Shown: positions 29,407 through 60,414, numbered from the stretch's first letter. The stretch: DNA of 64,000 nucleotides from Piromyces finnis finn (GCA_002104945.1 MCFH01000017.1:558001-622000), one strand, 5' to 3'. Program-made: numbers and translations. Notes: generated by a model not told the origin, from the sequence alone.

Positions 29407-29488
29407 CGTCAGCTGCAGGGTTTGAACCTGCGCGGGCAGAGCCCATCAGATTTCAAGTCTGACTCCTTAACCACTCGGACAAACTGAC
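29407..29488 (-). tRNA. tRNA-Ser(UGA), 82 nt, intronless, long variable arm
   Basis: GTCAGTT/GCTGACG acceptor stem, D-loop AGTGGTTAAG, anticodon stem TCAGA-CTTGAAA-TCTGA, T-loop GGTTCAAACCC; T5 terminator at 29401-29405. Confidence 0.97.
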
Positions 29489-29552
29489 TTTTTTATTTTT
29501 TATCACAATAACATATATAAAAATTTAAAAAATTTGGACACATGGAAAAAAT

Positions 29553-30696
29553 TGTCACGAATACTAGTGAAATTACAATTTCAAGATCACTTGGAATTGT
29601 GAAAACACTTATGAAAATTCAAAATCAACAAATATTTTATTTTCAAATAAATTATAAAATTTTATTAAGAAATATTTAAAAATTTAGGAAAGGTTAAAAT
29701 ATGACCTTAACCCTTAATAATTTTTATAATAAATAACTTTAACCCTTATCGTTAAAATGGAATAAGAAAAAACACGCGTATCTCCTCAACGAATGACGAT
29801 TTTTGAATAAAAATATTTTGGTTATAATTACGTTCGTTAGAAAGCCACGCTCGAGACAAACAACATATCTTAAAATCAGGTCAATATCTCTGCTGGTTCA
29901 CGAGATATTCCAATTTAAAGATATTTTGTTAGCAATGATTAATTGTTTATTCAGAGAATGATCACCCCTGATATATCAAACATAAATCATTCACTCAAAG
30001 TATAAAAATTATTGTTTAATTAAATTAAAATTATTTTCCGGAACTAATTAACTTTATTTTATAATAATTATTTCAATGACATAATTTATAATCTTTGAAC
30101 TAGAGGATTATAATTATTAATATTATATTCAATGAATTATATTATAATTAAGAAATAATTAATATTATGAATATTATAAACAATAGTTATTTTTTAATAA
30201 TTAGGAATAAGTCTTAAGTTTAGTTTAAGTATTATAAAATATATTATGAATATAATCATGTATTGAAAAGTTATTTTATTATTAAATGTAAAATTACAAA
30301 TAGTATAAATAGTTTAGAATAGTTATGAAATTAAAATCTTTGTAAAGATTATTAACTATAAATTATTAACTATAAATTATTAACTATGAATTATTAACCA
30401 AAAATTATTAACCATAAATTATTAAATTATTAACTATAAATTATTAACTATTAATAATAATTAATACTTAATGAGTATTACTACTAAATAATCTTATTAT
30501 TATATATTTTAGCAATATATCATTAAATAAAATAAAAGAAATTATTTTAACCATAATATATAATTTAATTATTCATTTATAAATCAATTAAGATTATTTT
30601 AATAAAACATTTTTTTTTTCTAACCTAGTTATCTTTTAACCTTTTATTTAATTTAATATTTTAATATTAAATTATAAGTTTAGTAAAACTTTTACA
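29553..30696. repeat. Solo-LTR-like insertion S1 (1144 bp) in the E1 5' LTR
   Basis: TGTCA...TTACA; TSD AAAAT; the host LTR restores to exactly 619 bp when it is removed. Contains ~14-bp TTATTAACTATAAA repeats at ~30350-30450. Confidence 0.88.
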
Positions 30697-31268
30697 AAAA
30701 TTAAAAATTTTTTTTAAAATTTGAAAATTTGAAAATTTGAAAAAATTTATTTTTTAAATTTTTATTAAAAAATTTCAAAGTATAAAATTTCTAATATTTG
30801 AAATTATTAAATTTTTTAAAATTATTAAAATTTTATTATTAAAAATTTTAATTTAAATTTATTAACTATTTACAATAATTATATTAATTATTAATTTATA
30901 AAAATTAAATATTTTATAATTAGATAATAATTAATTAAAATTAAAAAATGTAATAATTAAAATTGTTCATGTATAAAAAGAACAAAAATTGACAAAAATT
31001 ACGAAGCTTTAGCGTTAGTAATTTTTTAACCTAAAGTTAATAAAATTTATAAACTCCTATAAAACCTAAAACTTTAAAAATTTTAATATTTTTAATAACT
31101 TAATATATGCTGATATTAAGTTATTGCTAAAATAAAAATATTATTTAAATTTCTTTATATAAATATTATTAGCTTTACGCCTTCAATAGGAAAGCGTATT
31201 ATATTTATTAATTAATATAACTAGTGTGCTTACCACACTTTTCTTTAATAAAAAATCGCTTTTTGACA

Positions 31269-31279
31269 TTACTAACGCT
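31269..31279 (+). promoter_or_regulatory. Self-priming PBS of E1 (TTACTAACGCT)
   Basis: Directly follows the 5' LTR; perfect complement of AGCGTTAGTAA at 31011-31021, which lies 39 nt after TATAAAA. Confidence 0.85.
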
Positions 31280-31349
31280 TATTATAAAAGTGCGCTAAGC
31301 ACCAATTAGTTAGTTATTATTAATAACTAAATATAATAATTAAAGTTTA

Positions 31350-31552
31350 ATGGAAAAATCTCCACTTACACCTATTAAAGTGGATACAAAAGAATTTTTT
31401 AACCGCCTACAAACTACCAAGAGAGAACGTTCCCCAGGAAATACTCCCGTAAGAAAATCAAAGATGCCTAATCATTCCGGACAAGCTAATGCTTCTACGA
31501 GTAATCCTACTCAGAAGCCAACTACTAATGAGGATCTCAAGGCCCTCATTGA
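31350..31552 (+). CDS. E1 gag-pol, N-terminal part
   Basis: MEKSPLTP...EDLKALI joins in frame to 37682 (ATT GAG TCT...) after removing E1b. Confidence 0.85.
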
Positions 31553-32059
31553 TGTAAAGAACTAATGTTCAATAAATAAAAACACAAATATATAAAAAGG
31601 AAAATAATAAAAGCAAATAAAAATTTTATTATTGAACACTTAACAAAATTATAACAGGTTAGTGTTTAATAATTTTATTTTTATTATAAAATTTCTTTGT
31701 TAATAAAAACTCGAATTCAAAATAATTTTTTGAGAAATTTCACTCGTATTTATATAAATGTTTTTAAAAGTAAATTTATAAAAATTTTACAACTTAATTT
31801 TTTAAGCCAATCAGAAATTATCTTCTTTGGTAAAATTTCGTTATAAAATATTTTAATAATTAAAAAAAAGATATTAATGAGGTTTCGAACTCGAGTAGTT
31901 CAAACCAAGGTCTTAGTTACTAACCACTAAGACAGGTTACTAATTTCTATGATTCGTTACATGGTCCTCCTCCAGGATTCGGATACCAGACGAATCAACT
32001 AAATTTATTTGTTACTTTATTATAAAAGAAATAATTGAAACGAGTGAATACATTTTGAA

Positions 32060-32102
<43 letters not shown>

Positions 32103-32205
32103 TGAATATTAAATTATAAATATATTTTTTCATTTTCTATTTTCTATTTTCTATTCTCTTTTTCTCTTATCAATTACTAATTTTTTTTTAAATTAATAAC
32201 TATTA

Positions 32206-35200
32206 CTAATGTGAATTATTAAAGTTTTTAATTAGTTCATCGCAGTTTAAATTACTTTCAGGTTCCCAAGATGCTTCTGAAAGCGGATAACCTTTCCATT
32301 TTATTAGATATTGAATCTTCCCATAATGCTTTCTTTTATCAAGTATTTCTTCTACTTCGTATTCTTCTTCTTCATTTACTATTATAGGTGGAGGTGGATC
32401 TTTGATTCTTCCAAAACTATCTTCATAATACGGTTCTAGGTTTGAAACATGAACAATTGGGTAAATCTTCAGCGATTTTGGTAATTCTAATTTATAAGTG
32501 AGATTAGAGATTTTACTAATTATCCTAAACGGGCCAAGTTTCCTAGGATTAAATTTTTTATTTCCTTTATGAATTATCAAGGAGCTATCCAACCATACTT
32601 TGTCACCAGTCTTGAATGTCGGAGGTTCTTGTCTATACTTGTCGGCATATTTCTTTTGAACTTGGATGGCCTTCTTTAAGTTTTCTTTTAGTTTCTCCAT
32701 TAGGTCTTCAAAGTCTCTTGTAAACTCTTCAGCTCTTGGAACATTCGTTTGGTCAGGAATTACCGGAGAGTATTTTGGGTGATAACCATAATTTAGGAAG
32801 AATGGTGAGAATTTTGTTGAGTCTTGAACAGCATTATTGTAACTGAATTCTGCCAATGGAAGAAAGTTGATCCAGTTTGTTCCTTTATAATTAGAAAAGC
32901 ATCTTAAATATTGTTCAACAACGGAGTTTACCCTCTCCGTTTGGCCATTGGATTGATGATGATATGGTGAAGAATATTTAACATTGACGTCCAAAGATTG
33001 ACAAATAGATTTCCAAAATTTCGAAGTGAATTGCGCGCCTCTATCGGAAATAATTTCAGAGGGGAGACCGTGAATTTTGAAAATATAATTCAAAAAAGCA
33101 AAAGCAGTATCAGAAGCAGAAGGAATACCTTTAAAGGGAATGAGGTGGCACATTTTAGTAAGGCGGTCAACTACAACAAGAATAGTGTTAAATCCATCCG
33201 AAGGAGGGAGGTCAGTAATGAAATCCATAGAAATAGAAGCCCAAGGATGGTCACTAATCTCAAGGGGTTGAAGTAAACCATATGGTTTATGACGAGAAGG
33301 CTTGGAGCGGCAACAAATCTCGCAAGATCGGATATAATTCTTAACATCAATAGAAATGGATGGCCACCAAAAGTCACGAGAGATCAAAGAAATAGTTTTG
33401 CGGATACCAAAATGACCGGCAGAGGGGGAATCATGACAGAGTTTCAAAACGGAGGGACGGCATTTTAAAGGGACATAGATTCTACTATCAAAAAGAAGAA
33501 AACTATTACTAAGGGAGAATTTATTACTTTGTGGATGTGGAGCTGGGAGATTCTTATTTTCAAGAAAATTGCAAATGTCAATGTAAAAAGAGTCGTTCAC
33601 ATATTCAGATAATATTTCATCATTAAGAGAAGAAATGGAACAAATCAAAGCGCAGAAATTCTCAGGGCGTAAAACCGAAAAAGGAGCATCAGAAGGAAGA
33701 GAGGAATCCATATAATCAGGTCTTCGTGAAAGCGCATCAGGTTTACCATTAGATGAACCAGAGCGGTAGAGAATTTTAAAGTTAAATTCGGAAAGGAAAA
33801 GGGCCCAACGAACAAGACGTTGTGACATTTTTTCCGGTTTCTTTTGATATAGTAAGTTTCGATGATCTGAATAAATAGTAAACGGGGTTAAAGCACCTTT
33901 GAGAAAATGTCGCCAAGTTTCAAGAGCATTAACAATAGCTAAAAGTTCTTTATCGTATATAGGATAGTTTCTTTCAGCGGAAGTAAGAGATCTTGAATAG
34001 AAAGCGACAGGATGGATCATTTTATCATCAGGAGATTTTTGAGACAGAACTGCTCCTATAGCAAAGTTGCTAGAGTCGGTTTCAACAATAAAGGGAAGAT
34101 CACGATTTGGGTGAGACAGGATGGGAGCAGATGAAATTAATGATTTAATGGTATTAAATGCATCAAGAGCTTCAGAGGAAAAATCAAATTTAACGTTTTT
34201 ACGAAGTAGTCTGTGAAGGGGTTGTGCAACTTTGGCAAAATTAGGAATAAACCGACGATAGTAGTTGGCTAGGCCAATAAAAGATTGAACTTCCTTGACA
34301 CTGGACGGAACTGGCCAATTAATAATAGCAGAAACTTTATTGGGGTCCATATGTATACCTTCAGAGGATATCCGATGACCAAGGAAATCAATAGAGGAAA
34401 CAAAGAATTCACACTTTTCAAGCTTAGCATAAAGACCAGCATTTCTTAAGCGATCCAGGACTTCGATAACGTGCTTAATGTGGGATTTATGGTTTTCAGA
34501 AAAAATAATTAAATCGTCAATATATGAATAAACAAAAATCCCTAGAATATTTTCCAGAACATCATTGATAAAATGCTGAAAAACAGCCGGGGCGTTTTTC
34601 AGTCCGAATGGCATTACCAGGTATTCAAAGTGGCCGAATTTGCAGGTGAAAGCTGTTTTATATTCATCACCCTTTTTGATTCGGACCAAATTATATGCTG
34701 ATCGTAAATCCAATTTTGAGAAGATTTTCGCTTTACCAAGATGCTCTAGCATATCTTGAATCAGAGGTAGAGGATAGGAATCTCTAATGGTAATTTTGTT
34801 GAGTTCCCTATAATCTTGACAAAGACGGAGTTCACCATTCTTTTTAGGAACGAAAAGTACAGGCGCACCAGCAGGAGATTTGGATTTCCTAATGAAACCC
34901 TTTTTGAGGTTTTCATCGATATAATCCTTCAAAACTCTTGTTTCTTCGTCTGTTAGTGGGTAGATTGGTCCATAAAATAGCTTGGCATTTTCGATTAGGT
35001 TTATTTGGCAATCATAAGGACGATGAGGTGGTAATTGAGCAGCAGAAGATTCGCTAAAGACGTCCATATATGATTCTAATTCCTTCGGAAGTTTAGTAGT
35101 AGGATTTGAGTCTTTAAAAGAGTTTTTTGGTGAACAAGAATCAACTTTAGAAAGAGATATATTAGAAGCCATGACAGTACAAGTCTCTTGTGATAAAGGA

Positions 35201-36570
35201 TCGTTAACAGATTCATTGTTAATTAAGACAGATTTAGAACGATTTTCTTTGGGATTACGAGAATGAGATAACTTAGAATTTGAAAAAGAAGATTTAGGTT
35301 TGTCAATAAAAATAGGCAAAGAAACGGAAGAAGAGTTATTGCAATCAGTAGAAAAAACAGAAGTTTCCTGATGGAATTCGGGAACATTCGAAGGGAGAGT
35401 CATACAATGATCCAAGCAATATGAAGAACCAAAGGATAATTTATTATTTTCAAAGTCAATACTTGGATTATGTTCCTTAAGCCAACGTAGACCTAGAATA
35501 CAAGGATATACAGGTAGATCAGTAACGTAAAAGACAGTACGGCATAGGTGATCCATGTAGCGAAGATTAAGAAGTGGAGTAACTCCGAACAGTTTTTGGC
35601 TACCACCAATACCGAATACGTTGGGTAAATCTTCTTCATAGTGGTAGGGAATATTGTGATCGTTGCAATAGTCGACATCTATTAGATTAAGTGTAGAACC
35701 GGAGTCTATAAGAATTTTTGTGTCTAGTTCAAACGATAATTTAAAATTTGAGGTTACCCTATCTTGTTGATTTTTCTTGGAATTGGTAGAATTATTTTGT
35801 AGAGAAACTAAAGATTCGAATGCTGAGTTTTTATTTCTTCTCTTATGACAATCTTTCAGTTGGTGTCCTGGAGATCCACAATAGACACATAAGTTTTCCT
35901 TACTTCTTCTTTCTTTTTCTTCCTTGGATAACGGACCAAAGTATCTTTTCTTCTTGGGATGTTCTTTTAGATTTGTGGAAGCCTTTCTGGAGCCATTGCT
36001 GGAATTAGAACTTGGTCCCTTAGTATTTTTGTCAAAAAATAATCCCCTGGTAGCAAGTCTGGAGTCTATTCTAGCTGCAATAGTTTGGAGGGAAAACAAA
36101 TCTCTTGGTCCTGGGAACATCTCTAATATCTTCATTGCAACTTCTTGGTTGAGCCCAGCGATAAAAGCATCCATCTTAGCCTCTTCATTCCAGTTAGATT
36201 CATCAGAGTATTTGTTAAATTCAAGGATGTATCCTCTGATGCCGCCCAAACGATGTTGCTTGAGAGTACGTAGCATTTGATTGGCTACGTAGACTGCATC
36301 ATTGTTCCCGTAGAATGCCTTTAGTCTTTCCTTGAATGCTTGGTAGTTGGTCAGACATGGATCATGGTTGTCAATAAGCGTAGCGGCCCAATTTAATGCA
36401 TTTCCATAAAGGCGAGAAATCAGGTAGATAACCTTGCTCTCTTCATCTTGATATCTTTCGGGATAAAGGAGAAAAACAAGTTCTATTTTGGCTAAGAAAC
36501 CTTTGAGATATTTTCTGTCTCCTGCGAAACCGTCTTTTAGTGAGGCGTTATCAAATATTTGTCCTTCCAT
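32206..36570 (-). CDS. E1b single-ORF gag-pol polyprotein (1454 aa)
   Basis: CCHC (CVYCGSPGHQLKDC), LIDSGS protease, YSYIDD RT, ETDSS RNase H, HHCC/DDE integrase, GPF motif, canonical chromodomain (YEVEEIL...KWKGY...SWEP). Confidence 0.96.
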   Translation of the reverse strand: MEGQIFDNASLKDGFAGDRKYLKGFLAKIELVFLLYPERYQDEESKVIYLISRLYGNALNWAATLIDNHDPCLTNYQAFKERLKAFYGNNDAVYVANQMLRTLKQHRLGGIRGYILEFNKYSDESNWNEEAKMDAFIAGLNQEVAMKILEMFPGPRDLFSLQTIAARIDSRLATRGLFFDKNTKGPSSNSSNGSRKASTNLKEHPKKKRYFGPLSKEEKERRSKENLCVYCGSPGHQLKDCHKRRNKNSAFESLVSLQNNSTNSKKNQQDRVTSNFKLSFELDTKILIDSGSTLNLIDVDYCNDHNIPYHYEEDLPNVFGIGGSQKLFGVTPLLNLRYMDHLCRTVFYVTDLPVYPCILGLRWLKEHNPSIDFENNKLSFGSSYCLDHCMTLPSNVPEFHQETSVFSTDCNNSSSVSLPIFIDKPKSSFSNSKLSHSRNPKENRSKSVLINNESVNDPLSQETCTVMASNISLSKVDSCSPKNSFKDSNPTTKLPKELESYMDVFSESSAAQLPPHRPYDCQINLIENAKLFYGPIYPLTDEETRVLKDYIDENLKKGFIRKSKSPAGAPVLFVPKKNGELRLCQDYRELNKITIRDSYPLPLIQDMLEHLGKAKIFSKLDLRSAYNLVRIKKGDEYKTAFTCKFGHFEYLVMPFGLKNAPAVFQHFINDVLENILGIFVYSYIDDLIIFSENHKSHIKHVIEVLDRLRNAGLYAKLEKCEFFVSSIDFLGHRISSEGIHMDPNKVSAIINWPVPSSVKEVQSFIGLANYYRRFIPNFAKVAQPLHRLLRKNVKFDFSSEALDAFNTIKSLISSAPILSHPNRDLPFIVETDSSNFAIGAVLSQKSPDDKMIHPVAFYSRSLTSAERNYPIYDKELLAIVNALETWRHFLKGALTPFTIYSDHRNLLYQKKPEKMSQRLVRWALFLSEFNFKILYRSGSSNGKPDALSRRPDYMDSSLPSDAPFSVLRPENFCALICSISSLNDEILSEYVNDSFYIDICNFLENKNLPAPHPQSNKFSLSNSFLLFDSRIYVPLKCRPSVLKLCHDSPSAGHFGIRKTISLISRDFWWPSISIDVKNYIRSCEICCRSKPSRHKPYGLLQPLEISDHPWASISMDFITDLPPSDGFNTILVVVDRLTKMCHLIPFKGIPSASDTAFAFLNYIFKIHGLPSEIISDRGAQFTSKFWKSICQSLDVNVKYSSPYHHQSNGQTERVNSVVEQYLRCFSNYKGTNWINFLPLAEFSYNNAVQDSTKFSPFFLNYGYHPKYSPVIPDQTNVPRAEEFTRDFEDLMEKLKENLKKAIQVQKKYADKYRQEPPTFKTGDKVWLDSSLIIHKGNKKFNPRKLGPFRIISKISNLTYKLELPKSLKIYPIVHVSNLEPYYEDSFGRIKDPPPPIIVNEEEEYEVEEILDKRKHYGKIQYLIKWKGYPLSEASWEPESNLNCDELIKNFNNSH

Positions 36571-37262
36571 TAAAATTAAAAAAATATAATTGTTTGAAAA
36601 TAAAAATTATGTAAATAAGATAAAGTTATGTTTGAAGAAATTAAGAAAGAAAAAAAAAATTAAATCTTTATTATTATTTATTGATTAAAATATTTTAAAT
36701 ATAGACAAAGAGTCAAATTAAATAGTATTGGACCATCAAATATTTAATTTTATTAGTATTCAATACTAGGTCCCTTGTAGCTCTTTGTTGATAACGTAGA
36801 TATTATCAATTGTTAATATTGGAAATGAAAATTTTCAATAAAAGGAATTAACGGTATTAGTTTCTTTATTGTCACTTACTTAATTAAGCGGAAAGAAAAA
36901 AAATAGGTTTAATTCCCCGATTATTAATAATATCTAAACAACAAAGTATTACGTATAGGTGTCCAACTATCCACGCTAAGGGAGGTATTGAATCCTAACT
37001 TCTTTGTTATTTTAATATTTTTTCAAAAATAATAAATAAAATTTAATTTTATTTATTAAAAGTAGAAAACGTTTTATTAGAAAATGAATTTTTTCTTTAT
37101 TATTAAATTAAGCGTCCTGGCGCTCCCCTTATAATAACTGTGGGTTTTACTTTTGTTTTCAGTACCCTTATTGTTAAAATAAGCTTCACTGACTTACTTA
37201 ATTTTTTAATAAATTAAAAATTCTTCCTTTTTTAAACACTAAGGTGTTATTATATATTTTAG

Positions 37263-37272
37263 GAGTTTTTAT
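37263..37272 (-). promoter_or_regulatory. Self-priming PBS of E1b (ATAAAAACTC)
   Basis: Abuts the 5' LTR; complementary to GAGTTTTTAT in the LTR (37423-37432), ~44 nt after TATATAAATA. Confidence 0.75.
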
Positions 37273-37681
37273 TGTAAAGAACTAATGTTCAATAAATAAA
37301 AACACAAATATATAAAAAGGAAAATAATAAAAGCAAATAAAAATTTTATTATTGAACACTTAACAAAATTATAACAGGTTAGTGTTTAATAATTTTATTT
37401 TTATTATAAAATTTCTTTGTTAATAAAAACTCGAATTCAAAATAATTTTTTGAGAAATTTCACTCGTATTTATATAAATGTTTTTAAAAGTAAATTTATA
37501 AAAATTTTACAACTTAATTTTTTAAGCCAATCAGAAATTATCTTCTTTGGTAAAATTTCGTTATAAAATATTTTAATAATTAAAAAAAAGATATTAATGA
37601 GGTTTCGAACTCGAGTAGTTCAAACCAAGGTCTTAGTTACTAACCACTAAGACAGGTTACTAATTTCTATGATTCGTTACA

Positions 37682-40600
37682 ATTGAGTCTTTAACTGCTA
37701 CCTTAACTGGGAATATCAATCAGTTAAAGGTTGATATTCAAGCTACCAGAAGGGAAAACGAAAGTCTCAATGATCGTTTGACTGTTTTGGAAAACTCTAC
37801 TCAAGTTATTATGGGTAAGATGGCTACCTTAGAAGTCAACGATGCTAGGAAAGACAATCAACTCGCTGATATCAAAGCTCATATCAGCAAGGCTACTCAA
37901 AGAGTTGATGAGTTGTCTACTCCCGTTACTCCTTCTGCTACTACCCCTCACGAACCTGACGGTGACGTCATCATGGGAGATGCTTCGCCTCCAAACGTCG
38001 CTGAAAAAATGCTTTCTTACTCAGGAGAAAGTATTCAATTACGTAGATTCATCCGTCGATGCGAACATCACTTCCTAAGACACATCAAGTTCTATGGAAA
38101 CAATGAAGCTATGAAAGTAAACTTCATTGAAGATTGTCTTACTGGTGATGCTGCAGATTGGTACGATGTTGAACAAGCAGACTTCCAGGAATCTCATCCG
38201 AATAGAAAGGTTCTTTACGAAGCTTTGAGTAAGAGATTCCTTAACCCGAAGGATATCAACATCACCAAAATCGACCTGATGAAGCTCAGACATAGTTGGG
38301 GAAAAGCTTCCGAATACTTAGGAAAATTCTCCCAATATGTCAAATTAATTGGATGTTCCGAAGACATTCAATTAACCATCATGCTTTTCCAAGTTCGACC
38401 TACCGTGAACCACGCCTTTAGTAAATTAACTTCGGATAGACAGACGTTAGAAGAACTGAAGAATCTTCTAATCAAATATGATGCTTCCAAGGATACTTAT
38501 TACGATGATACTTTGGAAAGACAAGTCAACTACAAGGACAAAGAGCCCTTAATAGCTAATTTATTAGGTATTCATGGCAGTCTTTATTCCAAGAACCCTA
38601 ACAAGACTAACAATCGTAATAACAACCAAAGGAATAACAATAACAACAACCGCCCATCTAACCAAAAAGGAAAAGGCTCCAGTAACTTGGATAGCAAGTC
38701 TAGTACCCAAAATCCCAATAAAAGTACTAAACCTAATAATGGTACTTCATACTCCAGCTATCTCTGTGAAGTAGAAGAGCAAGATATCTTAGAGCTACCA
38801 AATCCTGATCCGGAGAAGTATCCCATCGTGAAGACTAGTGTAAAAACTTCTAAAGGATCTAGACAGATTATCACTTCGTCTCTCTTAGATTCTGGCTCTA
38901 CTACCAATGTAATCCATATGGATTTAGTGAAGAAACTAGGAATTAAGACCATACCAGCTGATACTGTTGTAAAGGTCATGGGAGGTAATGTCCTAATGCA
39001 TTACATCACAGAAGAGTTCAACATTGTAATGAACTTATCTTCTTTAGGAGGAACTCGAGAAGAGGTTCGTCAATACAAACTTCGATGCCACGTAGCTGAT
39101 CAGCTTCCTTCTTCGATTCTCCTAGGTTCTAAGTTCATGAAAACCAACTTCTTCTGTATCTTAACACAACCTGACCATTCCTTTACAGTTAAAATTGGTC
39201 CTGTTCCTTTCTCCAACCATAATGGATCTGAGATTAAATCTCCTAACTTTAGGAATGATTTGAAGAAATCTACACCTCTTCATGAAGTTATGTTTATCAC
39301 AGAACTCGAAGACTCAAATCTGGATAAATCAACTTCCATTCCAACAGAAACAGTCTTCATAGCCGATGATCAGAATCCTGAACTAGTAGAATCTATCAAC
39401 GGTATACCTTTGGAATATGAAGATTTATATGAAGCCTTCAATGAAGAACGAGCCGATGAACTTCCTGAACATCGTGTATATGATTGTTCTATCGATTTGA
39501 AACCTAATGCTTCATTATTTTATGGGCCAATTTATCCAACTACTCCTACTGAACGTCAATTTATTAAGGAGTATATTGAAGAAAACTTGAATAAAGGATT
39601 CATTAGAAAATCCCGATCTCCTGCTGGACATCCAGTTCTACTCCAAGATAAGAAGGATGGTAGTCTCAGATTTTGCGTTGACTATCGCAAGCTCAACGAC
39701 CAAACTATCAAGAATGCCTATCCGCTACCTTTAATCCTATCAGTCTTTGAATCAATGAAAGGTGCTAACTATTTCACTAAGTTAGACCTCAAGTCAGCTT
39801 ATAATTTAATTAGGATTAAAGAAGGTAACGAATACAAGACTGCATTCAGGACGGCATTTGGTCACTTTGAGTACTTAGTCATGCCTTTTGGACTAACTAA
39901 TGCTCCTGCAGTTTTCCAAGCTTTCATTAATGATATCTTTAGTGATCAAATTAATAAGTACGTTCAAGTGTACTTGGATGATATCATTATCTACTCCAAG
40001 ACCCTTGAAGAACATGTTCAACATGTTAGAAATGTTCTTCAATTAATCATTGAAAACAACTTAGTTGCGAAACTCAAAAAATGTGAGTTTCACAAAGCTG
40101 AAATCGAATTTTTGGGTCACGTAATCAGTAAGGAGGGAATCAAAACTGATCCTCACAAAATTGAAGCAGTTAAGAACTGGCCTATCCCCACTACTGTGAA
40201 AGAAGTTCAGTCCTTCTTAGGGTTATGCAATTACTACCGTCGCTTTATCTCTAACTTTTCTAAAATTGCAAAACCATTATACAACTTAACTAAGAAAGGC
40301 GTCACTTTCATATGGACAGACGAGTGTAATAGAGCATTTAATCAACTTAAAGAATTTCTTACTTCAGCTCCAGTTTTACTTTGTCCTGATCACGATAAAC
40401 CATTCATAGTTGAATGTGACGCAAGTGACTTTGCTATCGGGGGAGTACTTTCACAAAAAGGTGATGATGGAGACCTGCATCCAGTTTATTACTTTTCTAA
40501 AACCCTTCATGATGCAGAACTTAATTACTCTATCACCGAAAAGGAACTCTTAGCAATTCGTCAAGCTTTTATCGAATGGCGTCACTTACTTCAAGGTGCA

Positions 40601-49892: not shown

Positions 49893-50504
49893 AGAAGGGA
49901 GAAATTGATATAAATTGGAATTAATAAATATGAAATTATAATCTTGATATAAACTAACCCTCAAAACAACTTAAAAATAAATAATAAATAATAATAATAT
50001 TTAAATGTTTAATTAAAAGTATAAAAATTATTTATTAAAACTCAGTTTAAATTATATTTTTGTTATAAAATAAACATAGTATAAATAACATTTTAAATAG
50101 TAAAATAGTGTTATATTAATTAAATTAATTACTTTAAAATAAATTGTTTCTTTTATTTATTATTCATTATTATTTTAAAACATATTAATATTTTATTTTA
50201 AAAAAGTTAAAACAGAAAGAAAATTATAAATACATGTAATTATTTCCTAATTTAAAAATCAATCCATACTTTTAATAAATGTATTAAATAAAGAGTTGAT
50301 TCAAAAATATATTTTAAAATTGTGTTTTTAAAACATAACTTTTATATTTTGTTAATAATCGTTATGTCGAATTAAAATATTTCAAATAACTTTATAATAA
50401 AAATTTATTTTAAATTTTTTTTTTATATAAATTGATAAGAATATTATCACTTTTATAATTATTTAATTATAAATTAAGATAATAATAAAAACACTTATCA
50501 TTGA

Positions 50505-51645
50505 TGATAAATAATAATTATAAATATATTATAAATTTGATATTAGTAGAAAATTTTATTATAAAATAATTATTAAATAATTTTATATAGTTTATTATAA
50601 AAAAATAATTTACATAAAATCAAATATTTTATAAATTTATATATTTGATTGGGTTAAATTATAAAAATAATTTTTAATATAAAGAATAATAATAATTTTT
50701 AGTAGAAAATGAGAAGACTTAGATTACTAATAATAAGTTAAATTTTAATAATAGTTAATATAATTAATTAGTGAATACATAATAATATTTAAAAGACAAA
50801 AATAAGTTTATATATAATAAAAATTATTGTTAAAAAGAGCGTAAGAACAATAAATAAAAGAAAATATAAAAACGAAATTAAACTTGTCTAATTTGTAATT
50901 ATTGTGTTAATAATAAATAATATTTTATAGAATAAATCTGGTGTTATTATTCTATATAAATATTATTAAAATAATAAAACTATTAAAATTATAAAATAAC
51001 TTAAAATAAATTAATAAAACTAGTAGATATTGTTAAAGCTCGTACAATAGCTGTCGAGATAAAACAATATAAGATAACAGAAGAAGTAGTTAAAAAGTTG
51101 TAATATAACTACCAATCCGTTATCATTGATACGAAGAAAAAATATTATCTTAATTCTATAAATGAATATAGAAAGTGATAATATTTGTATCTAAAATTTA
51201 ATAAATAAAAATAAATAAGAAAATAAAAATAGAATAAATGATTTTTATACTTGTTCATTTGCAAGTCTTTGTTAGTTTAAAATATAAAATGATTTTATTT
51301 AATTATAAAGTTTTAATATTTAATAACTCTTGTATTATTAAATATATATATGTTATGGTTTAATACATCTTGAATGTATGTAAATATAATCACAACTATT
51401 ATTTTAATAAAATTTAATATTATTATCTAATTTTACTGGATTATTAGGAACATCTTTTAAAATAAAATAATTCTATCACTATTTATACAAAATTATTATT
51501 TTAAAGTATAATTATAAACAAATATAAACTATTAAATTTAAAAATAAATAAACAATTAAATAGACAAAAAGTTTACATTTATAGTTTTTAATTTAATAAT
51601 TTTATACATGTTAATTATTTTAATTTTCAACTATCTGTGTTTTAA

Positions 51646-51679
<34 letters not shown>

Positions 51680-51711
51680 AATTCATAATTTATAAATTTA
51701 ATTATTTATCA
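50505..51711. repeat. Solo-LTR-like element Z (1207 bp)
   Basis: Perfect 11-bp terminal inverted repeat TGATAAATAAT/ATTATTTATCA; flanks TTGA/TTGT; no second copy in the window. Confidence 0.65.
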
Positions 51712-51712
51712 T

Positions 51713-53317
51713 TGTCAAAAAGCGGTTTTTTATTAAAGAAAAGTGTGGTAAGCACACTAGTTATATTGTGAAGATATTAACTGGATTTAAAACAAATTCA
51801 GATAATATCTATAATTAATTAAACATAATAATTAGAATTAAATAATCCCAATAATTATTTTAAAACACCTTTAAAAGTCACCTTTTAAATTTTGGTTCAG
51901 TGAAAGGGTTATGATTTCAAAAAATTTAATATCAATACACTATAACCCTTAGCCAAAAATAAACAAATACGAAACTACGCATAACTCGCCAAAAACGAGT
52001 GCTACGGTTGTGAAACCAAGTTTATTAGAAAGCTTAAGGGAAAAAGCTATATTTTGGTATAATCGCGGTCCTTCTAACTGTTCATTTAAGGAAGATATGA
52101 TCATTTGAAGATTTTAATAAGTAAATTAAAATTAATATGATATCAAGTATGGATCATAGACATTTCTTATGACTTGACGAAAATTAAAAAGATATCAATA
52201 GAAATTCTAATTATATTAATTTAATTAATGATAGTGACTGTTACTAAAAATAGAACTAAACCATTTAGGTGTAACAGTTAACATTTATAAATTAAATAAT
52301 TTTAATTATTATAAAATAGGTTAATGGATCAAGTGTTTAAATGATTAATCATATGTTTATTTTATTTTATGTCATGACAAAACAAACAAACAAACAAACA
52401 AACAATCTTATTATATTATTAACATATTACATGTAATACTTTATTTTTATCAATTTAATAATCTGAACAAAGAATATAAAATAGAATGAATTGAATTCGA
52501 TTTTAATTCTTTGTAAAGATTATAGTTATAATCTTAATTATATAGTTATTAAATATATTATCATTTATATTATTATTAATAAATAAATAAAATTTTATAA
52601 AAAAAGTTATTCTAAAGAATAAATATTAATTTTTCATTTGGAAGTTTAAAGGGTTATTTTATATTTAAATTTAATTTCTTAAAAACATATTTACTATATA
52701 ATTGATAACATTCTGACCTGGCCGCATAATCAAATCCAAAAACTTAACATATATTAATTAATAAATATAATACGCTTTCCTATTGAAGGCGTAAAGCTAA
52801 TAATATTTATATAAAGAAATTTAAATAATATTTTTATTTTAGCAATAACTTAATATCGGCATATATTAAGTTATTAAAAATATTAAAATTTTTAAAGTTT
52901 TAGGTTTTATAGGAGTTTATAAATTTTATTAACTTTAAGTTAAAAAATTACTAACGCTAAAGCTTCGTAATTTTTGTCAATTTTTGTTCTTTTTATACAT
53001 GAACAATTTTAATTATTACATTTTTTAATTTTAATTAATTATTATCTAATTATAAAATATTTAATTTTTATAAATTAATAATTAATATAATTATTGTAAT
53101 TAGTTAATAAATTTAAATTAAAATTTTTAATAATAAAATTTTAATAATTTTAAAAAATTTAAAAATTTCAAAGATTAGAAATTTTATACTTTAAAAAATT
53201 TATTTTTAAAATTTTTATTAAAAAATTTCAAATTTTTAAATTTTCAAATTTAAAAAAAATTTTTAATTTTTTCCATGTGTCCAAATTTTTTAAATTTTTA
53301 TATATGTTATTGTGACA
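51713..53317 (-). repeat. LTR1-family solo LTR d with nested S2
   Basis: Reverse complement of 42857-43475 once 51767-52749 is removed. Confidence 0.93.
51767..52749. repeat. Solo-LTR-like insertion S2 (983 bp)
   Basis: TG...CA; TSD TATAT. Confidence 0.88.
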
Positions 53318-53324
53318 TTTTTGT

Positions 53325-53812
53325 TAATAAAGAATGAAATTTATAAATAATGAATTAATAGAATAGCTGATTTTAAAATTATAAACTTTAATATAAATTA
53401 AAATAATAGTAAATAATCAAACTAATATAAAATATAAATGTTTAATTAAATTTTAAAAATGTAAAATATAAACAACTTTTGTTTATAAACAAACTTAAAT
53501 GTAATTATTTATTATAAATAGAAATAGAAAATATTATTTTTAAAGATTGTTACTAATTAGCCAGGAAAATTAGAATATTTTAAAATTATAATAAATTAAT
53601 ATATTTTTTTTATAATACATAGCGAGATGTATTATACATTTATTTTAAATAAATAAACTAATATTATAAAACAAGATGTGTTTTTAAAACTTTAAATTAT
53701 ATTTAATTATATACTTGTAGAATGAGCAAGTAAAAATAAGTCATTTAAATACACAACAAATATACCACTTTCTAAGCTTATTTAGAATTAATGTATATTT
53801 GAACGTGTGTCA
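53325..53812. repeat. Candidate solo LTR X (488 bp)
   Basis: Ends GTGTCA; flanked by TTGT on both sides (53321-24, 53813-16); starts TAATA, possibly a mutated TGATA. No second copy in the window. Confidence 0.45.
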
Positions 53813-54322
53813 TTGTCACAATAACATATATAAAAATTTAAAAAATTTGGACACATGGAAAAAATTAAAAATTTTTTTAAAATTTGAAAATTTGAAAATT
53901 TGAAAAAATTTATTTTTTAAATTTTTATTAAAAAATCTCAAAGTATAAAATTTCTAATATTTGAAATTATTAAATTTTTTAAAATTATTAAAATTTTATT
54001 ATTAAAAATTTTATTTTAAATTTATTAACTAATTACAATAATTATATTTGAAAGAATAGAATTTAGCTAGAACTTAAATTACTAATAAAAATTTATATTA
54101 CTAATATTAAACTTTAATTAATAATAAAATTATAATGTAATTACTAATGTAATGTTTCTTAGAATAATCGTAACATATAGTATTACTAATTTACATTAGC
54201 CACATACTTTAGTATAAAAAGGAATTTGTAAATGTATTATTAAAATCTTTGTAATTACCTTTATTAAATTAAATTTAATAAACATAATAAATAAACTTTA
54301 TTAAACCTAAATTTACTTTTCA

Positions 54323-54336
54323 GATTAAGAGTCTCA
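54323..54336 (+). promoter_or_regulatory. C2 PBS GATTAAGAGTCTCA, complementary to the anticodon arm of tRNA-Lys(CUU)
   Basis: Reverse complement TGAGACTCTTAATC has a CUU anticodon loop with flanking stem bases; no TGG-type PBS is present. Confidence 0.7.
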
Positions 54337-57300
54337 ATGGCTACCGAATATATTCTTTCTAACCACGGACGTCCACTTAACGGTGACAATTTTAGTGCTT
54401 GGAAATTAAGAATTACCAGCATCCTCACCGCTTTAAATCTCAAGAATTATTTAGACCAAAATATTACTACTGATGGAATTCAAGATCCAGGTGAAATCCT
54501 AAGAATACAAAAGGAAAATGCAGCTGCTGTATCTATTATACTTAACAATATTGAAGATAAAATCTACCCGCTGATAACCGATACTGATACTGCCCACGAA
54601 CTTATGGAAAACTTAAAAATCCTCTTTGAGCAAGACGAAGATGTAACTTTACAAGAATGGATGAACAAATTAAGAGATATGAAGGTCAAAAATCACAAAG
54701 AAATACTTAGCGTAACTAGTAAAATGATGTCCATATTTAAACAAATGGAGAAGAAAAAGTTACCAATTACTGAACAAGAAAAAATAGATTATCTCTTAGG
54801 ATGTATGCCAAAGGAACTAAAAATCATTTTCATTTCTGGAACCACAACTACTGCAAATGACCTTTATGAAGATATTAAAAATAAATACAAATTACTCTAC
54901 CATATAGGAAAAAATAAAGAAATTAGAAATACAAGAAGCTATGATGAAGATATGATGGACATTGACTTAGTTAACAATATAATGAAATTTAACAAGGGCA
55001 ACAACAATAACTCTAGAATAAGCAAATACTGTCATATATGCAATATGAAAAATCATAATACTAGTGAATGCGGTTATAACACAAAAAACAAGAATAGATA
55101 CAACAAATACAACAATAACAGCAACAACAACAGAAGGAAACTATATCAAAATAACAAAAGAAATTATAATAGAAACAACATCAATTATTTAAACAAGAAA
55201 GAAATGGATGAAATTTTATCAAATGATGGACTTGCCTATATTAATAACATCAATAATAAAGAAAATAATGAGAAATCTTCGAACTCTACTACCTGGATAT
55301 ATGACACAGGTGCTTCTGAACACATAACTAATGATAAAAGTATTTTAAGAAATTTTGTTGAACAAAAATTAAAAATGAAGTGTGCCAACAATACTACTTG
55401 TGAATTTCAGGGATTCGGTACATACGAAGGAAAACTAAATAATCATAACATAACATTAAAAAGGGTTTTATACTCCAAGGATATAGCACAAAATCTAATA
55501 AGTGGAATAAAATTAGCACAATCACACATAAATTGTGAAATAATTAATAAAAATTTCAAACCACAGTTAATAATCAAATACAATAATAAAAATATATTTA
55601 GAACACATGTCAATAAAAGGAATAATTTCAAAATTAAAACACAAAATAATAATTTCAATGATAAAAAGATATATTGTATCAATGAAAATTTATCAAATAA
55701 TATATGGCACAATAGATTAGGACATTACTATAACAAAAATCTAGAAAATTTTTTAAAGTCACACAAAATTGAAAATAATGAATGCCTACATTGTAAAATA
55801 TCAAAATTAAATAGAAAACCACACAATGGAATCCCACCCAAAGCGACTAGAAGAAACGAAGTTATTCATTCCGATGTTATGGGACCTTTACCACCATCAA
55901 TAAATCAATATAAATATATTCTAACTTTTATTGACGAAGCTACTAGAAAAGGTTGGGTATTTAATCTAAAAAACAAATCAGATGTTACTAGTACGACTAT
56001 CAATTTTATTAAATTAATCAACAATAACTACCAAAATGAAAAAATTAAAATTTTTAAGTCTGATAATGGAAAAGAATACAATAATAAAAAATTATTAAAT
56101 TTTTGTAAACGAAATGGTATTAAGAAAGAATTTTCCCCACCTTACAATCCTCAAAACAATGGGATAGCTGAACGTTTCAACAGAACTATTACATCGTGCG
56201 TTAAAACAATTCTGTTTTGGGCAAAACTTAGTTTAAACTTTTGGGAATATGCAGTAAAACATGCTGTATATATTTATAATATGATACCACACAGTTGTAT
56301 TTCCAATAAAATTCCTAATGAAATATACTTCAATAAAAAGATAAATCTAAACTATTTAAAAACTTTTGGTTGCATTGCATACTATAAGAATTTCAACCAA
56401 AACAAAAGAAAATTTGATATAAACTCCAGAAAAGGAATTTACTTAGGATTTAATAATAATACTCACTGTTTTATAATTATGGATTTCTACGATCATAATA
56501 TACATTTAGTAAGAGAAGCAATTTTCATAGAAGAAAAACCAGGCAATCTCAAAATTGTATCCGGCAACAATCCTGGTTACTCTAATATTTCAAAAACAAA
56601 AATTTCTAATGGTACAATGGTATATAAACATGATCAGGAATCTAACTATGAGGAGATCGATACCAACCACTATCCTACCATAATTAAAATCAAGAATAAT
56701 TTTGACAATAATTATAATAATATCAGTGAGGATAGTTACACAGAAGAAATTTTTCAACAAAATAATAATCATGAAAATAGTGATGATGGTTACACAGAAG
56801 AAATTTTTCAAGATGAAAATAATCTTAACATTTATGAAAATGATGTAATTATTCAAAATAAAAAATTAGTTACCGAGAATTCCAACAAAGATAATAATGA
56901 AAATATCAGCAATAACAATAATAAAAGACCACTTTCACCTACTGAAGATACACATATTAGCAAATATAGAATTACAAATACAACTGAAGAAGAAAATACT
57001 TCTGAAAATATTGTAAACAACACTATTTATAATATTGACAATAATGATAAAAATTCTGATTGTAACACATTATTTTCTATTAATACTGAGGTTCCACTTA
57101 CTTTCAATGATATATTTAAAAGAGAAGATTGGAAAGAATGGAGACGCGCTATTAGAAATGAACTTTTTAATCTATACAATAATAAAGTTATGATATTTAC
57201 CAAAAATATTCCAGAAAATACAAATGTTATCTCTACAAAATGGGTTTTTAACATAAAACGTGATTCGAACAATAAAATTTCAACATATAAAGCTAGACTT

Positions 57301-58614
57301 GTTGCTAGAGGATACAAACAAAAATACGGAATTGATTATGACAATATCTACTCACCTACATTAGACATTGTTTGCATTAGACTCATTCTATCTTTAGCTG
57401 CAAAATTTAAATGGAACACCTACCAGCTAGATATTAAGGCCGCGTATTTAAATGCTCCATTAGACAAAAATGTTTATGTTTCTATTCCCCAAGGTGATAA
57501 AAACTACAATAAAGGTTTCTGGCTTCTTAAGAAATCGTTATATGGATTAAAACAATCAGGCCGTAATTGGAATATCACTATCTCTGAATTTCTCTCAAAA
57601 ATTGGATTTACTCAATGCAAATCGGAATCTTGTTTATTTTATAAAACTTTTGATAATTCTTTAACTTGTTTAATAGGTCTATACGTAGATGACATGATTA
57701 TTTCTGGCACTAATCAGGAACTTATTAGCACTATATTAAAAATTAAAAATAAATTTTCTATTTCAAAATGTGAAACTATTAATTTCATTTTAGGCATTCA
57801 GGTTGTACAGAAAAACTTCAGTTACACTATTTCCCAAAAATCATATATTGAAAACATTTTATCAAAATATAATTTTAACAATATTAAAAAATCTAAAACC
57901 CCTTGTACTGGTGAAAATTATGTTTCTAAGAACAATTCTTTATTCGATAAAACTATCTACAAATCGGCTATTGGTTCTTTAATTCACTTAGCTAAATGCA
58001 CTCGCCCTGACATTGCTTATGCTGTTAATAATGCCGCCAGATATTGTGAAAATCCTACTGTTAGTGACTGGCATAAAATCATTAATATATTTAAATATCT
58101 CAATTTTTCTATGGAATACTCTATCACTTATGATGGATCTGGTGAATTTATTGCTTATTCTGATGCTGATTTTGGGGGAGACAAAAATGATAGAAAATCT
58201 ACATCAGGCAATCTAATTTGTATGGGAAATAAACCAATCTTTTGGTCATCAAAGAAACAAAAAGTAGTTGCTCTTTCAACAGCTGAAGCGGAACTTATAA
58301 GTACTTCAGAACTAACAAGAAAAATCTTATGGCTAAGAAACATTTTTAAAGAAATTTTGAACAAAAATATAACAATAAAAATATATACAGATAATTTATC
58401 CAGCAAAAAGACAATTGAAAATGGACAATTCAACAACAATATGAAACACATAGACTTAAGAGAACACTTTATCTTTGACGCTTTTAAAAATAATAAAATA
58501 ATTTTAGAATATATAAAATCTGAAAATATGCTTGCTGATACATTAACCAAAAATACTAATGGGCCAAAAATGACTAAATTCACAAACTTAATTTTTAATA
58601 AACAAAATAAATAA
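54337..58614 (+). CDS. C2 gag-pol polyprotein (1425 aa)
   Basis: CHICNMKNHNTSEC, WIYDTGAS, WHNRLGH, HSDVMGP/KSDNGKEY, YVDDM, YSDADF; Copia domain order. Confidence 0.96.
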   Translation: MATEYILSNHGRPLNGDNFSAWKLRITSILTALNLKNYLDQNITTDGIQDPGEILRIQKENAAAVSIILNNIEDKIYPLITDTDTAHELMENLKILFEQDEDVTLQEWMNKLRDMKVKNHKEILSVTSKMMSIFKQMEKKKLPITEQEKIDYLLGCMPKELKIIFISGTTTTANDLYEDIKNKYKLLYHIGKNKEIRNTRSYDEDMMDIDLVNNIMKFNKGNNNNSRISKYCHICNMKNHNTSECGYNTKNKNRYNKYNNNSNNNRRKLYQNNKRNYNRNNINYLNKKEMDEILSNDGLAYINNINNKENNEKSSNSTTWIYDTGASEHITNDKSILRNFVEQKLKMKCANNTTCEFQGFGTYEGKLNNHNITLKRVLYSKDIAQNLISGIKLAQSHINCEIINKNFKPQLIIKYNNKNIFRTHVNKRNNFKIKTQNNNFNDKKIYCINENLSNNIWHNRLGHYYNKNLENFLKSHKIENNECLHCKISKLNRKPHNGIPPKATRRNEVIHSDVMGPLPPSINQYKYILTFIDEATRKGWVFNLKNKSDVTSTTINFIKLINNNYQNEKIKIFKSDNGKEYNNKKLLNFCKRNGIKKEFSPPYNPQNNGIAERFNRTITSCVKTILFWAKLSLNFWEYAVKHAVYIYNMIPHSCISNKIPNEIYFNKKINLNYLKTFGCIAYYKNFNQNKRKFDINSRKGIYLGFNNNTHCFIIMDFYDHNIHLVREAIFIEEKPGNLKIVSGNNPGYSNISKTKISNGTMVYKHDQESNYEEIDTNHYPTIIKIKNNFDNNYNNISEDSYTEEIFQQNNNHENSDDGYTEEIFQDENNLNIYENDVIIQNKKLVTENSNKDNNENISNNNNKRPLSPTEDTHISKYRITNTTEEENTSENIVNNTIYNIDNNDKNSDCNTLFSINTEVPLTFNDIFKREDWKEWRRAIRNELFNLYNNKVMIFTKNIPENTNVISTKWVFNIKRDSNNKISTYKARLVARGYKQKYGIDYDNIYSPTLDIVCIRLILSLAAKFKWNTYQLDIKAAYLNAPLDKNVYVSIPQGDKNYNKGFWLLKKSLYGLKQSGRNWNITISEFLSKIGFTQCKSESCLFYKTFDNSLTCLIGLYVDDMIISGTNQELISTILKIKNKFSISKCETINFILGIQVVQKNFSYTISQKSYIENILSKYNFNNIKKSKTPCTGENYVSKNNSLFDKTIYKSAIGSLIHLAKCTRPDIAYAVNNAARYCENPTVSDWHKIINIFKYLNFSMEYSITYDGSGEFIAYSDADFGGDKNDRKSTSGNLICMGNKPIFWSSKKQKVVALSTAEAELISTSELTRKILWLRNIFKEILNKNITIKIYTDNLSSKKTIENGQFNNNMKHIDLREHFIFDAFKNNKIILEYIKSENMLADTLTKNTNGPKMTKFTNLIFNKQNK

Positions 58615-59301
58615 TTAAGTTTGAGGGGAAGTGAAAGAATAGAATTTAGCTAGAACTTAAATTACTAATAAAAATTTATATTACTAATATTAAACTTTAA
58701 TTAATAATAAAATTATAATGTAATTACTAATGTAATGTTTCTTAGAATAATCGTAACATATAGTATTACTAATTTACATTAGCCACATACTTTAGTATAA
58801 AAAGGAATTTGTAAATGTATTATTAAAATCTTTGTAATTACCTTTATTAAATTAAATTTAATAAACATAATAAATAAACTTTATTAAACCTAAATTTACT
58901 TTTCAATATTAATTATTAATTTATAAAAATTAAATATTTTATAATTAGATAATAATTAATTAAAATTAAAAAATGTAATAATTAAAATTGTTCATGTATA
59001 AAAAGAACAAAAATTGACAAAAATTACGAAGCTTTAGCGTTAGTAATTTTTTAACTTAAAGTTAATAAAATTTATAAACTCCTATTAAACCTAAAACTTT
59101 AAAAATTTTAATATTTTTAATAACTTAATATATGCCGATATTAAGTTATTGCTAAAATAAAAATATTATTTAAATTTCTTTATATAAATATTATTAGCTT
59201 TACGCCTTCAATAGGAAAGCGTATTATATTTATTAATTAATATAACTAGTGTGCTTACCACAATTTTCTTTAATAAAAAATCGCTTTTTGACAATTTTTG
59301 T

Positions 59302-60414
59302 TGATACGCTACTCCCATAAAAACATAATAAAAACTAGCTGAATAAACACGACTTAACCCATAGTAACTTATAATAAAAATAAATGAAAATAACCTTTAA
59401 AAATGAATGAATAATAATTTTATGAAAATATAACCCTTTTTTTTAAATAAATAATATTCTCTTTATTATATAATAAATTCTGAGTAAAAACGACCTAATT
59501 GTGATAATAATAAAATAAATTATTAAATAAAATAAAATGACTTAATTCAATAATGTATTAAAATAATAAAATAATAATAAATAAATAAATAAAAATGAAT
59601 AAATAAACTAAAAATAAAATGATATACATCAAATAATTAATTCTAGTGTTTTATCCAAGTGTTCTTTAGAAATTCCTTTAAACTTATAAATTAATAAATA
59701 ACTAATTAAGTAATTATTATTAAAATGATAAACTTAAAACCTGGAAATAGAACAATAATAACAATTCTAAAGATAAAATACAGAACTCTTTTATGTTTCT
59801 GTATAAAATGAGTGTTTATAATAATTGATACTTTTAATATTTTAATTTTGTCTTAATTTCATTTTAATTTTATTTTAATTTTATTTTAATATTATTTTAA
59901 TTTTAAATTTAATTATTTTATTCAAGGTATTATACATTTAATGATAGTCAATGATAATTTATAATAATTCTTCTAAATTTAAACATTTTGAAGTAATAAG
60001 AAAATCAAATAAGTAATATTCTATAATATTTTATAATACTAAGACATAATTTTAATTTATTCTTTTAATTTTAATAAATAATAACAATAGTAATAATAAT
60101 ATCTAATAGTTAAAAATAATAATACATGTAATAAATGAAAATGTATAAAAGGAAGATAAAATTCTTCTTTATAAAAAGGGGACAATAAATAGAGAATAAA
60201 AAGACCATAAACAGATAATAAATAAATTATAAAATATAATAAAGATTTAATTTAAAACATAATAAGAGTTTATTTTCGAGTTTTGAGTGATTTATTTGTT
60301 AATTATAAAACATATTTTATTTTATTTTAAATTTATTGTTTCATCATAATAATATAGAATTTATTATTTATTAAAAACATTATATTATTCACAAATATAT
60401 CGGTCAACGCATCA
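59302..60414 (+). repeat. L0-family 5' LTR with tRNA-Ala-type PBS (TGGTGGAGAATCCGGGC, 60423-60439); internal region missing
   Basis: The 3' 680 bp match 28-672. Imperfect terminal IR TGATACGCT/AACGCATCA; preceded by TTGT. Alternative start at 59726. Confidence 0.72.

Follow-up and report, generated by a model that had tools for sequence, protein, structure and literature searches.

Eight successive insertions of two Ty3/Gypsy lineages immediately upstream of one tRNA-Ser gene in a 64-kb stretch of Piromyces finnis DNA

Integration directed by RNA polymerase III (Pol III) is the textbook case of safe-site choice by retroelements, and for Ty3 it is known at atomic detail. In yeast, clusters of sigma/Ty3 and delta/Ty1 long terminal repeats (LTRs) lie upstream of tRNA genes. 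Among Gypsy elements, Ty3, Ty3p, Tj1, Tca8, Tyl3, Ylt1, Tyl6, and DGLT-A have been tabulated as inserting upstream of tRNA genes, and clusters of TRE and DGLT-A elements are found in Dictyostelium (PMC5911963). Insertion of Ty3, 1-4 bp upstream of the start site, relies on two contacts, one between the integrase C-terminal domain (CTD) and TBP and one between the vestigial chromodomain, which serves as a ruler, and Brf1 (PMC8632968). Tj1, a Ty3/Gypsy element of Schizosaccharomyces japonicus, is self-primed, its primer-binding site (PBS) being complementary to the 5' end of its own transcript, and its insertions fall 5-11 bp upstream of mature tRNA 5' ends (Guo et al. 2015; PMC4600332). The chromovirus Skipper-2, whose chromodomain has diverged, is found downstream of tRNA genes (PMC5911963). 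In the literature on tRNA-targeted integration of transposable elements (TEs), no description was found for Neocallimastigomycota or other anaerobic fungi. The subject of the present analysis is a stack of LTR retrotransposons beside a single tRNA-Ser gene in 64,000 nt of Piromyces finnis DNA (GCA_002104945.1, MCFH01000017.1:558001-622000). This stretch, given as one strand with positions counted from its first letter, is referred to below as the window.

The sole Pol III gene that ARAGORN and Rfam detect in the 64 kb encodes tRNA-Ser(TGA). It lies on the minus strand at 29407-29488 (Rfam RF00005, 58.5 bits), with position 29488 as its mature 5' end (+1) and with a run of five Ts after its 3' end on the same strand. 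Upstream of the gene, that is, toward higher coordinates, a map drawn from self-BLAST, a listing of open reading frames (ORFs), and Pfam matches consists of abutting, complete LTR units separated by spacers of 1-12 nt. From the gene outward the order is E1, E2, Z (composed of two units, Za and Zb), d, X, c, and L0. These units are eight LTR retrotransposon insertions that entered successively at -7 to -14 of one tRNA-Ser gene, and they belong to two Ty3/Gypsy lineages, termed LTR1 (E1, d, and c) and TGATA (E2, Za, Zb, X, and L0). The window as a whole is TE-derived, and the host DNA is very AT-rich.

The spacers preserve the target-site duplications of these insertions. The proximal spacer, TTTTTTATTTTT (29489-29500; -1 to -12), ends in 5 nt that form the left copy of the E1 duplication, and the right copy, followed by GA, makes up the spacer TTTTTGA between E1 and E2 (43476-43482). 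TTGA (50501-50504) is at once the right copy of the E2 duplication and the left copy of the Za duplication. A single T separates Za (ending at 51125) from Zb (starting at 51127), Zb (ending at 51711) from d (starting at 51713), and X (ending at 53812) from c (starting at 53814). Between d and X lies TTTTTGT (53318-53324), and between c and L0 lies ATTTTTGT (59294-59301), which consists of the right copy of the c duplication and TGT. These strings agree letter for letter with those given in the original prediction, an earlier reading of the same DNA that had proposed repeated insertion into a zone of about 8 bp (-7 to -14) upstream of the tRNA, with the newest insert nearest the gene.

That model was examined by forward simulation. 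The starting state was the tRNA gene, the 14-nt ancestral spacer TTTTTTATTTTTGT, and L0, in that order; the LTR1 lineage was allowed to make 5-bp duplications at -7 to -12 and the TGATA lineage 4-bp duplications at -11 to -14. The units were then inserted in the order c (duplicating -7 to -11), X (-11 to -14), d (-8 to -12), Zb (between -11 and -12, without duplication), Za (-11 to -14), E2 (-11 to -14), and E1 (-8 to -12). The output is identical to positions 29489-60414 of the window, including all 41 spacer bases, which supports the proposed stacking. Perfect duplications are present at six of the seven insertions that can be checked. The A of TTGA turns out to be a copy of the third base of Zb, and the copies of TGT are the first bases of LTR1 units. 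At the time of insertion, the LTR end stood 14 nt from +1 in the case of E2, Za, X, and L0, and 11 nt from it in the case of Zb.

The TGATA lineage is best represented by E2 (43483-50500, plus strand), an apparently intact Ty3/Gypsy element flanked by a 4-bp duplication, TTGA, at -11 to -14. Its 595-bp LTRs are 100% identical; they enclose a tRNA-type PBS (44082-44094) and separate intact ORFs for gag (44857-46005) and pol (46017-49892). Because the integrase ends about 15 residues past an SH3-like CTD, E2 carries no chromodomain. The 13-mer TGGTGGAGAATCC follows both the 5' LTR of E2 (at 44082) and L0 (at 60423), as well as the LTR of four metagenomic relatives (L002, L008, L077, and L079). 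L0 (59302-60435, plus strand) comprises a 1113-bp LTR (59302-60414), the start of which matches L079 and the P0016 family, and then the PBS TGGTGGAGAATCC (60423-60435). It had been taken for a solo LTR; since the PBS of the lineage comes after it, it is the 5' LTR of a truncated element, so that no right-hand duplication is visible and the stack extends beyond 60414.

The remaining units of this lineage are solo LTRs. Za (50505-51125, plus strand; TGATAAAT...CCGTTATCA) is flanked by a duplication that matches at four of four positions (TTGA and T+TGA), and no relatives of it were found within the window. Zb (51127-51711, plus strand; TGATACGAAG...TTATTTATCA) is of the same family as X (53325-53812, minus strand), an inverted solo LTR with a TTGT duplication (4/4) that includes the first 3 nt of c. 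Za and Zb had originally been read as one element, Z, the junction of which called for one substitution and one indel. However, Z contains an internal junction at 51125/51127, where CCGTTATCA is followed by a T and then by TGATACGAAG, and reverse-complemented X aligns terminus-to-terminus with Zb only (local score z = 12.9 versus dinucleotide shuffles). Z is therefore two solo LTRs, which brings the insertions at the proximal site to eight. With this parse neither the substitution nor the indel is needed, and the junction is better accounted for by a single absent duplication, at Zb, which may reflect either a later deletion or entry by recombination.

The LTR1 lineage is represented by one full-length element and two solo LTRs. 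E1 (29501-43475, plus strand) is a Ty3/Gypsy element with, according to Pfam, a single gag-pol, and it is flanked by a TTTTT duplication at -8 to -12. Its LTRs of about 620 bp are 99.84% identical; the 5' LTR (29501-31268) is split by a nested insertion, ins1, and the 3' LTR occupies 42857-43475. Its gag is interrupted by another nested element, N, and its pol is broken by an in-frame stop (41897-41899) at a position at which P0053, a 79% relative, has Glu. The inverted solo LTR d (51713-53317, minus strand; 97.4% identical to the E1 LTR) likewise has a TTTTT duplication at -8 to -12 and carries the insertion ins2, and the solo LTR c (53814-59293, plus strand; 98.9% identical to the E1 LTR) has an ATTTT duplication at -7 to -11 and is interrupted by a Copia element. 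The 5' LTR of E1 is followed immediately by a 12-nt PBS, ATTACTAACGCT (31268-31279, plus strand), which is the perfect complement of AGCGTTAGTAAT at LTR position 362, some 35 nt past the TATA-like TATAAAAAG. The 12-nt complement is kept in every LTR1 copy. As had been proposed, the lineage is thus probably self-primed in the arrangement of Tf1 and Tj1, with the complement placed at the predicted transcript start.

The C-terminus of the E1 integrase, encoded beyond the stop (41900-42364, plus strand), was characterized with Pfam, alignment, and an AlphaFold2 model, and consists of an SH3-like CTD (Pfam SH3_Tf2-1, 7.9e-9) and a degenerate chromodomain. In the tail Pfam gives no match to Chromo, only one to Tudor-knot at E = 0.13. 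The tail aligns to the canonical chromodomain of N, the aromatic cage positions of which (Y, W, Y) are not retained in E1, and it is modelled with a chromodomain-like fold (predicted local distance difference test score 85-91). The top Protein Data Bank (PDB) match of the C-terminal model is the Ty3 integrase in its complex with TFIIIB and tDNA, 7q5b (E = 1.3e-3, 149 columns), followed by the chromodomains of HP1, Rhino, and CBX proteins (template modelling score 0.75-0.80, root-mean-square deviation about 2 Å). A chromodomain with an aromatic cage at the integrase C-terminus, the mark of chromoviruses, is thus absent from E1 and present in N (31553-37681, minus strand; ATTGA duplication), an intact chromovirus with a canonical chromodomain and 100% identical LTRs of 409 bp.

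Pfam analysis of the ORFs of E1, E2, and N places all three in Ty3/Gypsy, with the domain order protease, reverse transcriptase (RT), RNaseH, and integrase (IN), a Ty3-type capsid gag, and TG..CA LTR ends; for both E1 and E2 pol, the top PDB match is the Ty3 Gag-Pol of 7q5b. E1 is closer to the canonical chromovirus N (45-48% amino acid identity) than to any named element. In a FastTree phylogeny of RT-RNaseH-IN, which does not include Ty3, Tj1, DGLT-A, or reference chromovirus sequences, E1 and P0053 are sister to N (Shimodaira-Hasegawa-like support 93), and the three fall within a supported clade that also contains a chromodomain-bearing element and a sushi/GIN1-like protein of a fish. In the tree's other half, a distinct clade with 100% support unites E2, its relatives, and the L0 family (P0016). 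The distinction of two Ty3/Gypsy lineages, already drawn in the original prediction, is upheld by this separation. The designation of LTR1 as a chromovirus fares less well: a chromovirus ancestry would agree with the phylogeny and with the degenerate chromodomain, but the domain escapes Pfam and has lost its aromatic cage.

It is likely that, in the manner of Ty3 and Tj1, both lineages integrate at a constant spacing from the initiation complex of Pol III. The TGATA lineage, tRNA-primed, without a chromodomain, and making 4-bp duplications, would cut at -11 to -14 or -15 from the mature 5' end, and the LTR1 lineage, apparently self-primed, with a degenerate chromodomain and 5-bp duplications, would cut at -7 to -12; the zone of insertion as a whole probably coincides with the Pol III start site. 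Each new copy would land on the gene side of its predecessor and displace older ones outward, and the older copies would collapse to solo LTRs through recombination between their LTRs. By analogy with Ty3, the tether may be TFIIIB (Brf1/TBP), and the degenerate chromodomain of LTR1 could serve as the ruler; the TGATA lineage would have to use a different surface.

For the TGATA lineage the same geometry is observed at two other tRNA genes, on two independent metagenome contigs. An exact-sequence look-up with E2 pol returned no record; many relatives at 45-82% identity are present in ENA, JGI, and Logan metagenomes. In L001 (71% amino acid identity to E2), the LTR ends in ...CTTATCA (GCGCTTATCA) and is followed by CTTTTGACAAAATGA (15 nt) and then by +1 of a tRNA-Arg(TCT) gene. 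In L010 (45% amino acid identity), the LTR ends in ...CGTATCA and is followed by AAAAAATAACAAGG (14 nt) and then by +1 of an initiator tRNA-Met gene. The spacer sequences and the tRNAs differ and the orientation is opposite to that of E2, with the distance remaining the same. At more than one Pol III gene, LTR ends of this lineage are thus found within about 20 bp on the upstream side, as expected of Pol III targeting, and no tRNA gene was found in 44 distant Gypsy control loci from the same scan. In L010, the initiator tRNA-Met and a tRNA-Ser(GCT) gene lie 1-2 nt apart on one strand (5792-5948), apparently as a dimeric tRNA gene.

Several observations weigh against targeting by both lineages. 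As regards the stack itself, Zb has no recognisable duplication, and the array is 4 nt short of its expected total. As regards the TGATA lineage, L001 and L010 are the only two outside contigs that are informative on flanks, most contigs of the E2 clade (L002-L009, L077-L079, and L108-L110) either ending within the LTR or running from the LTR to the PBS. In L002, L008, L077, and L079 the sequence passes from pol through the LTR directly into the PBS; contigs of this kind indicate that assemblers join the contexts of 3' and 5' LTRs and so yield false flanks. As regards LTR1, this is the sole locus that shows targeting, and all three insertions also lie 2-3 nt from the end of a TGATA LTR, which makes the reference point ambiguous. 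P0053, the sole close relative of LTR1, is on a contig without flanks, a metagenome scan with an E1+P0053 profile found no relative, and scans of viral contigs with profiles of both lineages gave nothing relevant. More distant E1 relatives (52-70% integrase identity), found with a piece of the integrase, are P0087, P0093, P0095, and P0099, represented by 31 loci (L081-L111) with several different flanks. ARAGORN, run with and without introns, and Rfam detect no tRNA or other Pol III gene near any of them, and the P0099 family has several distinct flanks with zero Pol III genes. Finally, no tRNA accompanies an LTR1-like fragment at 18704-19130, the neighbour of which is a truncated N-like LTR.

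These findings bear chiefly on the alternative that only the TGATA lineage is directed to Pol III genes and that LTR1 prefers, for example, LTR ends or short T-runs in TE-rich chromatin. The closeness of the three LTR1 insertions to TGATA termini and the lack of LTR1 support elsewhere would both fit such a preference. So would the 18704 fragment, which is inverted, is 94% identical to LTR1, and meets an N-like LTR without its last 8 nt (18522-19130), as well as L111 (3057-3096), where the LTR of an E1 relative is followed by 20 nt that end in CGTTACA and resemble an N-type LTR end. With no outside support, the case for LTR1 depends on three insertions beside a single gene. Nevertheless, these three are independent, occur in two orientations, are 97-99% identical, and left clean 5-bp duplications within the 12-nt proximal spacer; for self-primed Tj1, the published position is 5-11 bp upstream of the mature tRNA end (PMC4600332); and E1 has a Ty3-like CTD and chromodomain tail. 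Moreover, the absence of tRNA genes near LTR1 relatives is weak evidence, because old copies in a stack end up tens of kilobases from the gene. The alternative as a whole has a small but appreciable probability. Of the original claim that both lineages are tRNA-targeted, the part concerning TGATA is strengthened by the spacings of 15 and 14 nt in L001 and L010, and the part concerning LTR1 still depends on the single locus. Near another E1 relative, L101, a stretch about 880 bp from the LTR (2618-2693, minus strand) shows an A-box (TAGTACAGTGGTA), a B-box (GGTTCGAATC), and a T-run; it was rejected as a tRNA gene, as neither ARAGORN nor Rfam calls it (E up to 1).

Recognition of a DNA motif, ATTTTTG(T/A), in place of the Pol III complex would explain why every duplication in the window is a piece of that motif. 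It is nonetheless very unlikely: of the 40 occurrences of ATTTTTGT in the window, only the copy adjacent to the tRNA has clustered LTR termini, so that sequence alone is an insufficient explanation, and the spacers of L001 (CTTTTGACAAAATGA) and L010 (AAAAAATAACAAGG) differ at the same distance. Untargeted nesting in a TE graveyard, or misassembly of identical LTRs, with the tRNA incidental, could draw on the TE-derived nature of the whole window, on four ordinary nested insertions in the stack, and on the metagenome contigs in which LTRs mislead assemblers, but is equally improbable, since random nesting would break up older elements, as N, Copia, ins1, and ins2 have done, whereas the eight units are adjacent, with their termini complete and their duplications matching, every junction is unique sequence, and outside contigs repeat the geometry.

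All four nested insertions have 5-bp duplications. In addition to N, they comprise ins1 (29553-30695, plus strand), a 1143-bp TG..CA unit in the 5' LTR of E1 with an AAAAT duplication at -60 to -64 from the tRNA; ins2 (51767-52749, plus strand), a 983-bp TG..CA unit in d with a TATAT duplication 49-53 nt from the tRNA-proximal end of d; and the intact Copia element in c (54049-58905, plus strand), with 100% identical 274-bp LTRs and an ATATT duplication. The duplications of ins1 and ins2 are nearly equidistant from the tRNA-proximal LTR1 end, and that of ins2 would have lain at -62 to -66 when d was the proximal unit. The LTR1 copies that host them are in opposite orientations, which excludes a sequence hotspot. 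ins1 and ins2 could be a third family with a ruler of its own; overall they resemble each other only weakly (z = 6.4), and the GC-richer core shows no homology. A tentative extension, which we consider possible but rather doubtful, is that three rulers operate at this one tRNA gene, TGATA at -11 to -15, the cage-less, chromovirus-derived LTR1 at -7 to -12, and ins1/ins2 at about -60 to -66, and that Pol III targeting had several independent origins within a single genome, that of an early-diverging, non-compact, extremely AT-rich eukaryote.

Other TEs occupy the remainder of the window. Another element of the TGATA lineage, assigned to the L0/P0016 family (77-85% amino acid identity to P0016), occupies 1-672 and 658-4556 on the minus strand. 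After the end of its 3' LTR, near position 28, come TTGTAAGAAATATTT and, at the window edge, GTGGCCATAAGT; a tRNA could begin about 15 nt from this LTR end, where the window ends. Just past the remnant of L0, a degenerate chromovirus fragment (60946-62570) contains a 460-amino-acid ORF in which RT is fused directly to SH3 and chromodomain, the RNaseH and the integrase core being deleted. A tandem array at 9499-18183 consists of 3.2 units of 2691 bp that are 99% identical. Each unit contains an LTR-like segment of about 605 bp, which is also found as single copies at 7885-8497, 23046-23648, and 62607-63191, and the array looks like tandem LTR-internal-LTR copies of a non-autonomous element. A degenerate Copia-like element in several ORFs occupies 19380-25824 on the minus strand (37-61% amino acid identity to the intact Copia in c).

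As a natural record, the stack is unusually clean: order, position, and duplication are legible for eight successive events. The elements would extend Pol III targeting to hosts of a new group, probably the anaerobic fungi of the rumen or gut, and to two clades with different equipment, one with a degenerate chromodomain like that of Ty3 and one without any; E2 looks intact and might be put to use experimentally. Were targeting to hold genome-wide in a large, gene-poor genome, the view that genome compactness is the main pressure for tRNA targeting would be weakened. Should the three-ruler reading be true, Pol III targeting would operate outside compact genomes, where it is usually explained as gene avoidance. 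The original prediction had regarded such targeting as undescribed in anaerobic fungi or for chromoviruses. The published list includes both self-primed and chromodomain-derived targeters, however, so the kind is already known: Tj1 is self-primed, the vestigial chromodomain of Ty3 binds Brf1, and Skipper-2 has a diverged chromodomain (PMC4600332, PMC8632968, PMC5911963).

Several described systems can be compared with the locus. In dictyostelids, DGLT-A, a Ty3/Gypsy element, inserts by tRNA genes in an AT-rich genome in either orientation but 13-33 bp upstream, a zone wider than that seen here, and Skipper-2, a Ty3/Gypsy element with a diverged chromodomain, inserts downstream of tRNA genes (PMC5911963). 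Ty3 of Saccharomyces cerevisiae resembles the LTR1 lineage in its 5-bp duplication and in an SH3-like CTD followed by a vestigial chromodomain (PMC8632968, PMC5911963). It differs from E1 in using a tRNA primer and in having gag and pol in different frames, and from E2, which makes a 4-bp duplication and lacks a chromodomain. Tj1 is likened to LTR1 (E1, d, and c) by priming and position, given the 12-nt self-complementary PBS of LTR1 and its insertion at -7 to -12. Tj1 belongs to a different host, has a separate gag ORF with a stop in place of the single gag-pol of E1, and inserted in one orientation only in its assay, whereas LTR1 is found in both. At the level of the locus, the sigma/delta clusters of yeast and the TRE/DGLT-A clusters of Dictyostelium likewise arose from repeated hits at one Pol III gene that produce arrays of solo LTRs and full-length elements. 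The present stack differs from them in that eight units keep their termini and duplications, and the order of events can therefore be read base by base.

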